This document shows, piece after piece, positions 1-54,200 of a DNA stretch of 64,000 nucleotides. Origin of the DNA: Ostrea edulis (lineage: Eukaryota); the NCBI RefSeq assembly GCF_947568905.1, contig NC_079164.1, positions 108,500,001-108,564,000 on the forward strand, read 5' to 3'. Under the pieces are notes generated by a model. That model saw nothing but the letters and a program-made list of their open reading frames with translations, was not told where the DNA came from and searched no databases. How positions within the stretch are numbered: position 1 is the first letter of the stretch; each line of letters starts with the position of its first letter. The position numbers and the translations under genes were made by a program.

Positions 1-3000
1 TTTATTAATGAGGTTGACCAGGTACTCTTTGTAATGAATCCTGTACAAAATCAGAAACAACTTAAATTAGGAAATCAAACAGTGTTACAAAACCAGAGGT
101 CTGAAATCTGGTGCAATCTGTACAGTATACATTTTGGCACCAAACTTTGAATCCTGAAAACTTAAAGATGGTATCACAAAATACATATATATCCTAGACT
201 CTGGATGCTGCCCAAACTGTGTACATCTTCTTCTGGTACTTGGTAACTTTATGGCACCAACTGCATTTGGTTTAAACAAATTTTTTTGCATTTAGCATCC
301 ACAATATAAACAAATTCCAGAGCCTTTTTAAAATGCTTATGGTTTTGAAAATACATGTAAATATTCTTTTTAATGTGTAAGGTTGCATGTCTCCCAACAT
401 GGAAAATTCTATTCTTTACTTAAAAATCACACTGTAATGATAAGTCTTCAGGAAAAAATAGGATATTCTGATGCTTTCACACAGAGTCCAGCATTGTGAT
501 ACTTACAGAGTCCAGCATTGTAATACTTACACACAGAGTCCAGCATTGTAATACTTACACACAGAGTCCAGCATTGTAATACTTACACACAGAGTCCAGC
601 ATTGTAATACTTACACACAGAGTCCAGCATTGTAATACTTACACACAGAGTCCAGCATTGTAATACTTACACACAGAGTCCAGCATTGTAATACTTACAC
701 ACAGAGTCCAGCATTGTAATACTTACACACAGAGTCCAGCATTGCTGGCAGCGACTTCTTTACCACACGCTTCGTCCTTTTTTCCTTCATGAACATCCTT
801 TAACTCCATGACAGGACAGTGGTGCGGATCCTCCTGGTTTTCCGGGGATTCCATGTCAAACTTAACATGCTTTTCCTGTACAGACAGAGAACATGACAAA
901 CTCTATATATATCACTTAACTATAGGGCTACTTAGATTATTAGGTATTAAAGCATTCAAGATTTGCCATTTCAGTTTTCCTCTTAATGGTACTTTGCTTG
1001 TGGAAAGAAATGATGTTTAAAATATCATATCACTTGACAAAGGGCTACTTAGATTAAGTACTTGAGAGTTTCAGATTTTCTCTTAATGTGACATGTACCT
1101 TGCATGTGGAAAGACGTTTACCTTTAACAGACGCTGAAGGTCTTCCACCGAGTTGTCACGGAGATAGTAGAAACAATCCCGGGGATGATGACAGTGAAGA
1201 CCTTTACCACGGCAACTTTTAAACTTCAGGCAAACCTTCAAAGTTAATGTTTCAAATGAATTTGAACTGGATTTGAAGCACACATTTTTTCAGAGATAAA
1301 TGAAAAATTGAAGTGGATATTCAGTTAAACTACGTACATGTATATTAGCATTACATTGATTAGATACAGAAACTATTGACCATTACATTCTTGGTATATT
1401 GTAAAACTATGTGACCAAACTGCAGCTTTTGGCGAAAAAACCCCAACAACTTACTCCTTTGGAGTCAAAAATCTGAGAGCATCCACTGCAGAACTCATGT
1501 CCACACTCGGGACAGTTGAAATGCATACAGCCTCCTTTTGCCAGAGAAAACCTCATTTTACAACTAGGACAATCTAGAATGGAAATAAATTCATAAGTAT
1601 ACTCATTATACACTGTAATACACGTATTCCTTATGTAACATACATCTATAAACACTTAAACTTACCAAATCCAATATTGTTGAAAATAATATGCTTGTAC
1701 ATATTTTCATTTCCTTGCAATGTGTGCACATTGTGATGCTAATGTACGTATATTATGTACTTTCTGTAGGAAAACCTACCGATTCCATTGGTTGCCAGAT
1801 GAGCTGCCAGACCCATGGCCTGGTTCTCTGGGTCGTTGTCTATCTTCCACTGTTCATACTGCTCACAAGTCAGACCTTCATGTTGATCCTCCCACTGAAT
1901 GACAAATAAATCTGTGAAACAGCATGTCCCAAACCGTGCTTAAGTACAATTATTGTCAATTTGACTCTGACCTATGACCTTAACCAAGGTATCTCTGAAC
2001 TTATGGACATAATAAAATACACCTGATGTTTGAGGTTAATGACATAAAACATTCATAAGACCATGGCATTGTTGAGGCTTATAAGAGTGCAGTGCTTGTA
2101 CTGAGTTTCTGTGGTGGATACTTAATTACTTTTGAATAGGGCACAACTACAAGTATACTCCAGTTATAAATGTAGTTCCAACAGATTAGTTTAAACGTCA
2201 TCATTTACAGGTAGTCAGACTACATATCATTTACAGGTAGTCAGACTAATGCATATTAAATTCTCCAAGAACACACACTGCAACATATAACATAAGGACT
2301 GATGCACTGTACATCATAAATACAGGAAGAGTTTTTAGCCGTTTGGGTGATCTGGCCTTAATTCAAATTTCCATGGTGTTTGTTTTTTAAATTCTGAGTG
2401 AGTCGATGATTTGGTAGTCAAGAGTTATTACTAACCACAAATTAGCATTGACAGAGAATCCTGGCTTGTTAGAGTGGGTTCTCCTATTGGAGACTTTAAC
2501 ACTTCTTTCATTTTCAACTTTGCAATATCTGGATTTTCACATTTCTTTGTGTCCAAAACCAGTACGGGTACTATATATTCCTAATTTCAGCAAGTACTTG
2601 AAATTATAACATTACTTGATGATATAAAATTGCGAGAATGCTTGAAGATATCAAATTGCAAGAACGAGAATTCGTTAGTGGTCTGTTGATCAATAGTTTT
2701 TACCTGCATTTTAGAAACATAGAAATAAAAGCAGTAATATTTCGTGAGTGGTGCTTCTCACTGAATTTTGTGATAATAAATTCCTTCTATAAATTACGGA
2801 ATCCACTGTACCCTATCTTTATTTCAGGTGTATCATTTCTTTATTACTTGAGTGACAGGCATGAAAAAACCAACCACTTTCGGTCAGTGTATTGGACCTC
2901 CAGAGATGAAATTCTAACTGTCAAACTTTTAGTTTCTAACTAATTCTTCATTTTACTGTGTTTCATACTCCATGCATGAAACAATTCAAGAAGCATATGT

Positions 3001-51200: not shown

Positions 51201-54200
51201 ATATTGTTGATTTGGATCTTCTGCTTGGAGTAGGTGTATAAATCTTCCCATGAGCACCTGCTCCTCAGCAAAGTCTTCTGGGTCGTCTGGTTCTGTTGGC
51301 TGATCACTCTGGTCTTGTACCAGGACATTCACAATGTTAAGAATGCTGTCCACCTACAACAAGGACATTCACAATGTTAAGAATGCTGTCCACCTACAAC
51401 AAGGACATTCACAATGTTAAGAATGCTGTCCACCTACAACAAGGACATTCACAATGTTAAGAATGCTGTCCACCTACAACAAGGACATTCACAATGTTAA
51501 GAATGCTGTCCACCTACAACAAGGACATTCACAATGTTAAGAATGCTGTCCACCTACAACAAGGACATTCACAATGTTAAGAATGCTGTCCACCTACAAC
51601 AAGGACATTCACAATGTTAAGAATGCTGTCCACCTACAGCAAGGACATTCACAATGTTAAGATTGCTGTCCACCTACAACAAGGACATTCACAATGTTAA
51701 GAATGCTGTCCACCTACAACAAGGACATTCACAATGTTAAGAATGCTGTCCACCTACAACAAGGACATTCACAATGTTAAGAATGCTGTCCACCTACAGC
51801 AAGGACATTCACAATGTTAAGATTGCTGTCCACCTACAGCAAGGACATTCACAATGTTAAGAATGCTGTCCACCTACAGCAAGGACATTCACAATGTTAA
51901 GAATGCTGTCCACCTACAACAAGGACATTCACAATGTTAAGAATGCTGTCCACCTACAACAAGGACATTCACAATGTTAAGAATGCTGTCCACCTACAAC
52001 GTACAGGTATATGATGAAATGAGAGGATTATATTCCTTAATCAAGATACAATCCAAAAGAATGTTTGAGTAATAAAACAAAGTAACACCATGTTCAGTTC
52101 AAATTCACATTACCTAATTTCTCTTTTCATTTATAAACCCATGAGAAATAACAAGGATGAAACATTACCTGATCCTGTGTGGGTATACAAGTTTCATTTT
52201 CCAGCACATTGTTGATGAGATAGGAGCACATGATTTTCCTGCTCTGGTAATCAAAATAATCAAAAATGGGACCAAAGTGTTGCAATTCCAGGACTGTCAG
52301 AATATTGTTGTAGGAGTCTACTGGGATCTTCATTAGTTTCATCAGTTCCTTGGAAACCAGACTGCCATACTCCAAACTGAAAATAAGATACAATGGGTAA
52401 TTTAAGTTCCTCTAATTTAAGGATGGTACACAGAATGCAGATGTCAAGTTTCAAAATCAGAAATCATAGTAAGTTACCATATCATAGGTATTTTCTGTGG
52501 TTGTTCCAATTTTTGTAGATTTCTGCAAATTGCATAAATCTTCAAAATGTACAAATGAAAAAATATTCCAAACATTTCAATGAGATATGAGATAAAATTG
52601 CATTAAAAAATTCAGTAGTTCCTATTGCAAGGTACTTGCACACATGACTTCATCTATAATTTGATTACTATTAAGTGGTTCTATGTTTATGGGGATCTAA
52701 AATAAAATTTGATAACTATTCACAGAGGCAATGCAATAGATAATAGTTGATAGTAGTGATAGAGTTTGTTTCAGTTCATATTTAGTAGACTAACTGCCAT
52801 GCAATGTTTCTACTTTCAGGATAAAAGTTTTTACACCTGCGATAACATTTTTGGTAGTAAAACAAAATCACGAAAATTGAAAATGCAGAAATCAATGGTG
52901 CTTTTTAGGGATCAAATTGCAAAAATTTTCAACCACAGAAAAATACTTAATATATTGTAAAAAGTGTTCAAAATATAAACATTGTGATCAATTATTAAAT
53001 ATTCTATTTCAATAATGAGCTCGGAAATAAAAGGAGAGGTGTTTGTAATAACACAAAAGCCTATTTTCTACTTTTCAACATCTAAATCGTAGGTCTTTAC
53101 AGAGTTTAAAACGAGGTATCATATGCTTATATTCGTGAAGTTTTCCCACCCTGTAGGCTATTACGATTCTAATATGCATGTAAATGCAGCTCAATAAAAT
53201 ACACACTGATCCAGATTGTGTCTGTTGAAGATATCCTCAGTTGTTTCCAGTACTTTGTCAACATAGTCCACTTTATCTGGGTAACATTTCAGTGCCAGGT
53301 TAACCAGCGCCACCTGTAGGGCAACAATGTCCTCGGGAGGCATGTCGGGTCGATTCTGACAAAAAAATTATTGAGACACAATTCCACAAGTATTCAGAAT
53401 ACAGTGGAATCATTTGTAATTTAGTTTTAACTTTGAGTAATGAGTCAATTTCAGGGCACTGTCTGACAACTCCAGTTAGTTTTATACATACAGTGCATAT
53501 AAACAACCTTCTTTTTAACAAAGAAAAAAATCTTTAAAATTTTTAGTGACATTGAAGACGAAGAATCAACCGTCACAATTAGCCAGCTTTAATAATACAG
53601 GATTTATAGACCATGATTAAAGCATCTAATTTCTTATTTTAAAATCTATTCACCTGAATAACTTGCGCTATCTGTTGTGAGAATATATCAAAGAGCTGAA
53701 TCTCTGGGGGAATTCCTGATCCCTCCTCATTCTGTGCAAATTGGGCAAGCCTGAGAAACAATTGAAAATTTAAATGTTCTGTAAAACTGAATGCTGTGAT
53801 AATTGAATGTGCAAGTAACAATGGGAAAACATGAGGTTACATGTATCAACAGCCGACGCTATTACAAAATCTCGATCTTAGCCAGTATAATATGTGTACA
53901 TACTGCACCATCACTATCCACAAAACTTTTACCTCTACGAAGAATTTATGATTAACCATCATGGACAAGATTCATGAGGTTTGAAAACCTTAAATATAAT
54001 GTAAAGTGAAATGGGGAGAGAACACACTACCTGTCTACTAAGGCTATAATGACGTTTTTCACATTGACACTCTCATGGAGTTCAGCACAGGCTTTGAGGA
54101 AAGGATTTAGAGTCTGTAGATGGAAATCATCTGGGAATACCTATCAAAGAGACATCATTATAAACATTCTTTTTCTGTTTTTCTGTAAGGCAAAATGTTT

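Follow-up and report, generated by a model that had tools for sequence, protein, structure and literature searches.

Why should the borders between exons and introns become tandem repeats, and how could a gene whose own splice sites have been copied many times over still deliver an intact message? This question is raised by a window of 64,000 nucleotides, i.e., the whole stretch of DNA analysed here, which forms part of chromosome 1 of the flat oyster Ostrea edulis (OX387704.1, assembly GCA_947568905.1) and has a G+C content of 31-39% throughout. In this window, seven segments at exon-intron borders are tandemly copied 2 to 71 times, in three neighbouring genes within 52 kb, namely RNF31 (HOIP), VPS35 and a gene for a coiled-coil protein. 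The answer for which we argue below is that these arrays are probably young minisatellites that their host genes tolerate.

All seven arrays are built of head-to-tail units in the range of 10-100 bp, and each of them (7/7) contains a real splice junction in gene models that have an open frame and use GT-AG introns only (Table 1). The first unit, on the exon side, crosses the authentic boundary, and from there the authentic site is reiterated into the intron, giving about 106 intronic decoy splice sites that are the same or nearly the same as the authentic ones; support is weaker for the two arrays of the coiled-coil gene, whose model was built from frame continuity and consensus splice sites only. 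Tandem Repeats Finder (TRF) detected six of the seven junction arrays (units of 28, 38, 46, 70, 43 and 40 bp) and missed the 32-bp triple because its middle copy is split by a 38-nt insertion; this triple was identified by direct reading of the sequence. An earlier note on this DNA had described seven junction-straddling repeats in three genes, with units that join a piece of exon to the splice site belonging to it. The first of these statements is confirmed by TRF, direct reading and the GT-AG gene models, and the second holds for each of the seven arrays, with the qualification that three of them have only 2-3 copies and that the exon share of the 38-bp unit is only about 5 nt.

Table 1. Junction arrays, the exons and genes that carry them, and one mid-intron array, in window coordinates (a slash marks the exon-intron border).
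Feature	Gene	Position	Strand	Size or copies	Remarks
28-bp array	RNF31	474-744	−	9.8 copies	one real donor (G at 726), eight decoy GTAAGT donors
38-bp array	RNF31	13466-16195	−	71 units, including 36-, 44- and 46-bp variants	70 decoy donors; fills intron 4
46-bp array	RNF31	16565-16683	−	2.6 copies	real acceptor (first exon base 16588) preceded by two decoys
32-bp repeat	coiled-coil gene	26106-26239	+	3 copies	real donor G at 26126, last exon base 26125
70-bp duplication	coiled-coil gene	30040-30176	+	1.9 copies	one decoy donor; last exon base 30078 (exon 29977-30078)
43-bp array	VPS35	50822-51214	−	9.1 copies	one real donor CTA/GTAAGA (G at 51197), eight decoys TTA or TTG/GTAAGA
40-bp array	VPS35	51322-52000	−	17.0 copies, 98% identical	16 decoy acceptors
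Exon 20 (LDD)	RNF31	727-875	−		last exon base 727, phase 2 end
Exon 4	RNF31	16213-16276	−	64 nt	last exon base 16213; required for the frame between exons 3 and 5
Exon 11	VPS35	51198-51353	−	156 nt, 52 residues	first exon base 51353, last exon base 51198
Coding region	RNF31/HOIP	1-17561	−	21 coding exons in the window, 1602 residues	extends past the window start
Coding region	VPS35	48245-56606	−	16 exons, 792 residues	no stop
Four linked exons	coiled-coil gene	26026-26125, 26294-26393, 26714-26793, 29977-30078	+	127-residue frame	strong consensus sites
55-bp array	RNF31	3251-3977		13 copies	mid-intron, off any junction

In VPS35, exon 11 is flanked by an array on each side, built from the splice site at that end. 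On the donor side, the 43-bp unit comprises the last 15-17 nt of the exon and 28 nt of intron, and GTAAGA is kept in 8/8 decoys, with a change from C to T at position -3. On the acceptor side, a 7-nt intron tail (GTTGTAG) and the first 33 nt of the exon make up the 40-bp unit; TGTAG/GTGGAC is kept in all 16 decoys, and a branch-point-like TCTTAAC lies in each unit, 24 nt upstream of the next AG. At window position 51321, the authentic exon copy has a synonymous G and 16/16 decoys have T. As the exons of C. gigas and S. echinata also have T at the equivalent position, the G is private to the expressed copy.

The underlying VPS35 model equals NCBI isoform X2 of O. edulis except for six N-terminal residues, which come from a further upstream exon; the annotated gene begins near 58954 and has one further 5′ exon. 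The genomic locus of the NCBI O. edulis protein 'vacuolar protein sorting-associated protein 35-like isoform X1' (L052) matches positions 47242-59954 of the window base for base on the reverse strand, which places the window on chromosome 1. A look-up of the O. edulis VPS35 isoform X2 found no match. Over exons 10, 11 and 12, the Pfam Vps35 profile is continuous (380-442, 443-486 and 488-527) and is bounded at the residues that end the exons. Apart from the arrays and unrelated to them, an alternative small exon in intron 9 (about 52477-52602) adds 15 residues to NCBI isoform X1, and C. gigas isoform X1 has a different insert of four residues at that same junction.

RNF31 carries three of the arrays. 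Its model was assembled by picking GT-AG pairs that keep the frame, and no stop interrupts it; the large exons encode the UBA pair of HOIP and a RanBP zinc finger (Pfam). Four orthologues, found with the exon of 497 residues, align to 13-14 exons (tblastn). Three oyster proteins, one from C. gigas assembled from RNA-seq data (P0185) and two NCBI entries of Saccostrea (P0186 and P0202), are colinear with the model and 76-80% identical to it. The joins of exons 3/4/5 and 20/21 are conserved in the C. gigas and Saccostrea proteins, and the tblastn matches begin or stop precisely at the edges of the array-bearing exons.

The 28-bp unit consists of the last 17-18 nt of exon 20 (LDD domain) and GTAAGTATTA. 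This exon joins exon 21 at 40-1 (...AGLCV/IHYKEY...), and a Pfam match to E3_UbLigase_RBR extends to its final residue. An open reading frame of 43 residues that ends in the first 28-bp unit had no match in other sequencing runs. Upstream in the gene, the 46-bp unit combines about 22 nt of intron tail, with pyrimidine tract and AG, and the first ~24 nt of exon 3 (PUB domain); the tblastn matches of all four RNF31 orthologues start at the first base of the exon given in Table 1. The relatives' contigs that hold the 497-residue exon end short of any array.

The third array fills intron 4, where TRF called a 38-bp repeat with 70 copies. Its unit starts with AGCTT from the tail of exon 4 and continues with GTGAGT, and TT/GTGAGT is kept in 70/70 decoys. 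The peptide encoded by exon 4 is the same in S. echinata, and an exon of this length is also present in loci L054 and L055. An alternative frame for exon 4 (TGCGKIPEE...) was rejected, as it meets a stop at exon 5 and is not matched by the orthologues.

Two further features lie within RNF31 introns. A strong donor-like motif, AAT/GTAAGAGT as read on the gene strand, occurs in each unit of the 55-bp array and is not derived from the real donor 150 nt upstream, and intron 10 contains a run of 29 G at 6112-6140 (C on the gene strand).

The coiled-coil gene is the weakest part of the case because no family or homologue was found for it: Pfam searches with six exon translations gave nothing meaningful, and one exon compared with a protein atlas gave only sub-threshold bacterial matches. 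The 32-bp unit is made of a 20-nt exon tail and GTAAGGAGGTTT. In its second copy, a hairpin-forming insertion of 38 nt (26158-26195) lies exactly at the decoy junction and destroys the decoy donor; the donor of the third copy is intact. The insertion has a 7-nt inverted repeat (CTCATGA...TCATGAG) and occurs once in the window. For the 70-bp duplication, whose unit takes 39 nt from the exon tail and 31 nt from the intron, no downstream exon was found, so the choice between its two donors is inferred from the coiled-coil frame only. A separate array in the 3.2-kb intron of the same gene (27030-28787, 1.8 kb) has a 15/26-bp unit (TCCACATACTGTCTG) in about 64-127 copies and yields long spurious open reading frames in several frames.

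What would happen if a decoy were used was determined in silico by substituting each decoy for the real site in the gene models and locating the first stop. Decoy use always leads to a premature in-frame stop, 1 to 42 codons later, or to a frameshift. Counted from the real junction, the first stop comes after 1 codon in the 28-bp array, 6 in the 38-bp array, 12 in the 32-bp repeat and 2 in the 43-bp array; counted from the upstream junction, it comes after 18 codons in the 40-bp array and 36-42 in the 46-bp array, and the decoy donor of the 70-bp duplication adds 70 nt and thereby shifts the frame. The description of the extra copies as poison sites that had been given earlier is thus correct for every decoy at this level. 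Such disruption is nearly automatic, because each extra unit brings intron sequence along.

Comparison with other oysters bears on the age of the arrays. Here, VPS35 of C. angulata, C. gigas, C. virginica and S. echinata and RNF31 of S. echinata and S. cucullata were included; the exons of these relatives were mapped exactly, and TRF was then run. None of the five other oyster assemblies has an array at the corresponding VPS35 and RNF31 junctions. About 13 arrays are present in the relatives' copies of the two genes, and none of them touches a junction. Orthologous introns measure 105 nt (RNF31 intron 4 in S. echinata) versus 2825 nt in O. edulis, about 320-340 versus 815 nt, and 203-713 versus 553 nt. 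As the arrays are absent from the other oysters, they arose in the Ostrea lineage. A scan of metagenomes with VPS35 exon 11 returned 38 loci, the best of them 75% identical and none from an oyster; a full-length gastropod-like VPS35 transcript (L003) found in this way was then used as a search query.

Exon borders and sizes are equal to those of the other oysters, including the 64-nt exon 4 of RNF31 and the 156-nt exon 11 of VPS35, and the number of RNF31 introns is the same across the part of the gene within the window. The idea that duplicated exon edges provide a route to intron gain or splice-site sliding, also raised in the earlier note, was consequently rejected.

The arrays themselves also point to a short history. 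The 71 units of the largest one comprise 11 distinct sequences, corresponding to about 8 mutational events, one of which falls in the donor 9-mer. With only 11 unit types, this array is recent or still being homogenised, and a test for constraint on the decoy donors has no power, because the 71 units hold too few independent changes. In two arrays, the four bases with which the unit starts recur past its last copy (AAGC in the 38-bp and AATC in the 43-bp array), and such 4-nt microhomology fits slippage between short direct repeats.

We therefore consider a history of the following kind to be the probable one. Short tandem duplications of 28-70 bp in the Ostrea lineage would have happened to cross splice junctions, most likely by replication slippage or microhomology-mediated repair, and would later have been amplified by unequal exchange. 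Duplications lying wholly within exons would be removed by selection; those straddling a junction could persist, because one intact site adjoining the exon remains. Productive mRNA would come from the copy next to the exon body. In donor arrays this means that the most upstream site would be used, matching the 5′-to-3′ scanning rule of human F7 intron 7, and in acceptor arrays the last AG, probably picked by exon definition together with the nearby donor. In VPS35, the choice of acceptor may be helped by TCTTAAC; since this motif is carried in each 40-bp unit, the unit before the real exon can supply a branch point. The decoys are likely to be mostly silent, and transcripts leaking from them would meet a premature stop and be expected to undergo degradation by nonsense-mediated mRNA decay (NMD).

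How far the placement of the arrays departs from chance was assessed within the three genes. As null expectation, each array was collapsed to one unit, and the chance was calculated, per unit length, that a random founder segment which is not wholly exonic holds a junction. This chance is 5-32% per array, because the genes are compact, with 40, 30 and 7 junctions in 13.8, 7.2 and 2.3 kb. Nine further arrays of these genes, with a period of at least 10 and a TRF score of at least 50, touch no junction, e.g., 3251-3977, 27030-28787, 49950-50079 and 54370-54456, the last of which lies 31 nt from an acceptor. Considering all 16 arrays, 7 are at a junction, whereas 2.33 would be expected (P = 0.004). 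If the set is limited to arrays detected by TRF, the count is 6 of 15 versus 2.22 (P = 0.014), and among those of at least 2.5 copies it is 5 of 8 versus 1.31 (P = 0.004). The excess of junction arrays over this null is real but modest, about threefold, in a window selected for this pattern, and the P values overstate it because the selection was for exactly this pattern. Regarding the proposal that placement is not random, an excess was thus found in these three genes, and the reservation that random slippage filtered by selection could account for the arrays stands.

This excess is one of several points that weigh against tolerated duplication as the whole account, as it goes beyond what tolerance alone explains. 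Moreover, classical proximity rules for duplicated strong donors favour downstream sites, and scanning from an upstream branch point favours the first AG, not the last, in acceptor arrays. The sites adjoining the exons are the only ones that fit the annotated VPS35 of O. edulis and the oyster RNF31 derived from mRNA; annotation is, however, no independent proof of site use, because gene predictors favour open frames and hence models that keep the frame.

An alternative option could be a mutational bias, in which some process in O. edulis lets tandem duplications arise or expand preferentially at exon-intron borders, so that the arrays are non-functional and their placement is non-random. Candidate causes of such a bias are replication forks that stall near splice sites, at polymerase pauses or R-loops, and breaks at the edges of the nucleosome in exons that hold a single one. 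The counts given above speak for it, as do the two arrays at both borders of VPS35 exon 11; that none of the ~13 arrays of the same two genes in the five other oyster assemblies lies at a junction hints at a lineage-specific process. On the other hand, the inflated P values come from a window chosen for the pattern, and among roughly 800 annotated windows a few such cases would be expected by chance. The exon share of the units varies widely, from 5 to 39 nt, as it would with random breakpoints, the units have no motif in common, and there is no known mechanism. We regard this explanation as possible but not likely. Doubtful, and slightly more so, appears the broader proposition that a lineage-specific process, be it mutational or selective, makes splice junctions of the flat oyster preferred birthplaces of minisatellites, with introns of ordinary housekeeping genes accumulating tens of perfect decoy donors or acceptors on either side of an exon.

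The arrays could also serve as rheostats of expression: decoys would take part of the splicing, NMD would destroy the products, and array length would act as a heritable dial open to selection. Consistent with this, the decoys all reproduce a working site almost perfectly and would each lead to a premature stop, and the 31-bp variable number tandem repeat (VNTR) of human CBS is associated with reduced activity, while IFI6 and CBS use the first two pseudo-sites (PMC1557585). Elements of regulated unproductive splicing are, however, unlike the arrays described here, which are absent from these junctions in all other oysters examined; conservation of decoy arrays as poison elements was found in none of C. 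angulata, C. gigas, C. virginica, S. echinata and S. cucullata. The units vary too little to reveal whether the donor motif is constrained, no need for such tuning is evident in VPS35 and RNF31, which are housekeeping genes, the pseudo-sites of F7 remain silent, and annotated and homologous proteins use only the sites adjoining the exons. On these sequence comparisons, an NMD rheostat would be possible but is unsupported and seems unlikely, the missing conservation arguing against it.

That faulty assembly has produced the arrays, or only their copy numbers, is highly improbable: tandem arrays are classic sites of such errors, and the copy number of one haplotype need not hold for the species, but the assembly was made with hifiasm from 38-fold PacBio HiFi reads (PMC10979132), the largest array (2.8 kb) is well below read length, the arrays have an internal variant structure rather than perfect stutter, and short-read contigs of other O. 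edulis, 99.4% identical, break exactly inside three arrays that are not at junctions (49979, 49913 and 47299), as would be expected of real repeats. As a side observation, these contigs (L056-L059), which come from four further sequencing runs of O. edulis, are 99.1-99.4% identical to 47299-49979 and are without about 50 nt of 47643-47730; the two pieces that align there have 37 nt in common, which looks like the collapse of a short local repeat.

Apart from the three genes with arrays, the window contains a COX4-like gene (40395-41189, − strand) and a SYS1-like gene of Golgi trafficking (43092-43904, + strand), both recognised by eye. They sit between the coiled-coil gene and VPS35 and have no tandem array. 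At 59626-60129 (+ strand), a C-terminal fragment of a reverse transcriptase resembling that of long interspersed nuclear elements adjoins 60188-60574, which was noted earlier as a hammerhead retrozyme. No Rfam family was found anywhere in the window at the gathering threshold.

With regard to their significance, the oyster loci offer larger and more varied natural test cases of splice-site choice than the human donor-side junction minisatellites, the model that revealed 5′-to-3′ scanning in this choice. In one of these cases, an exon of only 64 nt is followed by 70 identical decoy donors; in another, 16 identical decoy acceptors each have a branch-point-like motif of their own; and in an essential retromer gene, a constitutive exon of 156 nt lies between an array of its acceptor and an array of its donor. 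If a lineage-specific process is indeed at work, the spliceosome would routinely select one correct site among up to 71 identical ones, and the genome of the flat oyster as a whole would be a natural experiment on how sites are chosen at the two ends of an intron. An excess at junctions throughout the genome would suggest that transcription or splicing is linked to tandem duplication and would hint at a source of fast change in intron length. If the excess is not genome-wide, the arrays would be ordinary by-products of a genome rich in minisatellites and would matter mainly as traps for gene predictors and RNA-seq aligners.

Minisatellites at splice junctions are a known class, with examples in human F7, CBS, IFI6, LMNB2 and PDGF (PMC1557585). 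Less familiar are acceptor-side arrays and an exon that has copies of its own sites arrayed on either side, and in the literature on oyster intronic minisatellites nothing was found on splice junctions. F7 intron 7 holds a 37-bp VNTR of 5-9 copies, the first monomer of which comprises the last 4 bp of exon 7 and 33 bp of intron; its pseudo-sites are functional, yet the most upstream site is chosen by a process of the 5′-to-3′ scanning type (PMC1557585). The likeness lies in a first unit that spans the boundary, with the authentic donor followed by identical pseudo-donors, and it is very close for the 38-bp array of RNF31, in which ~5 nt of each unit are exonic and 33 nt intronic. In F7, only the most upstream site is used and the array is length-polymorphic. 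In contrast to F7, the number of decoys goes up to 70 in the oyster, where three genes within 52 kb carry seven such arrays.

The 31-bp VNTR in CBS intron 13 and the array in intron 2 of IFI6 (6-16) resemble the oyster loci as exon-border minisatellites that supply multiple donors, and the CBS copy number is associated with enzyme activity. They differ in that alternative use, i.e., of the first two pseudo-sites, is documented there, whereas it is only predicted for the oyster, where every decoy would break the frame (for the human side, PMC1557585). LMNB2 (100-bp unit, 10-15 copies) and PDGF intron 4 (81-bp unit, 16-18 copies) share long arrays that start from a donor and use of the authentic site only, but have larger units and are restricted to the donor side. 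Tandem duplication of AGGT-containing segments, described in vertebrates, potato and Drosophila (PMC3265369; PMC4974935; PMC2891723), likewise copies splice signals through a short duplication. There, however, a new intron or a moved border is the outcome, whereas in the oyster the positions of introns are unchanged and it is an existing intron that grows.

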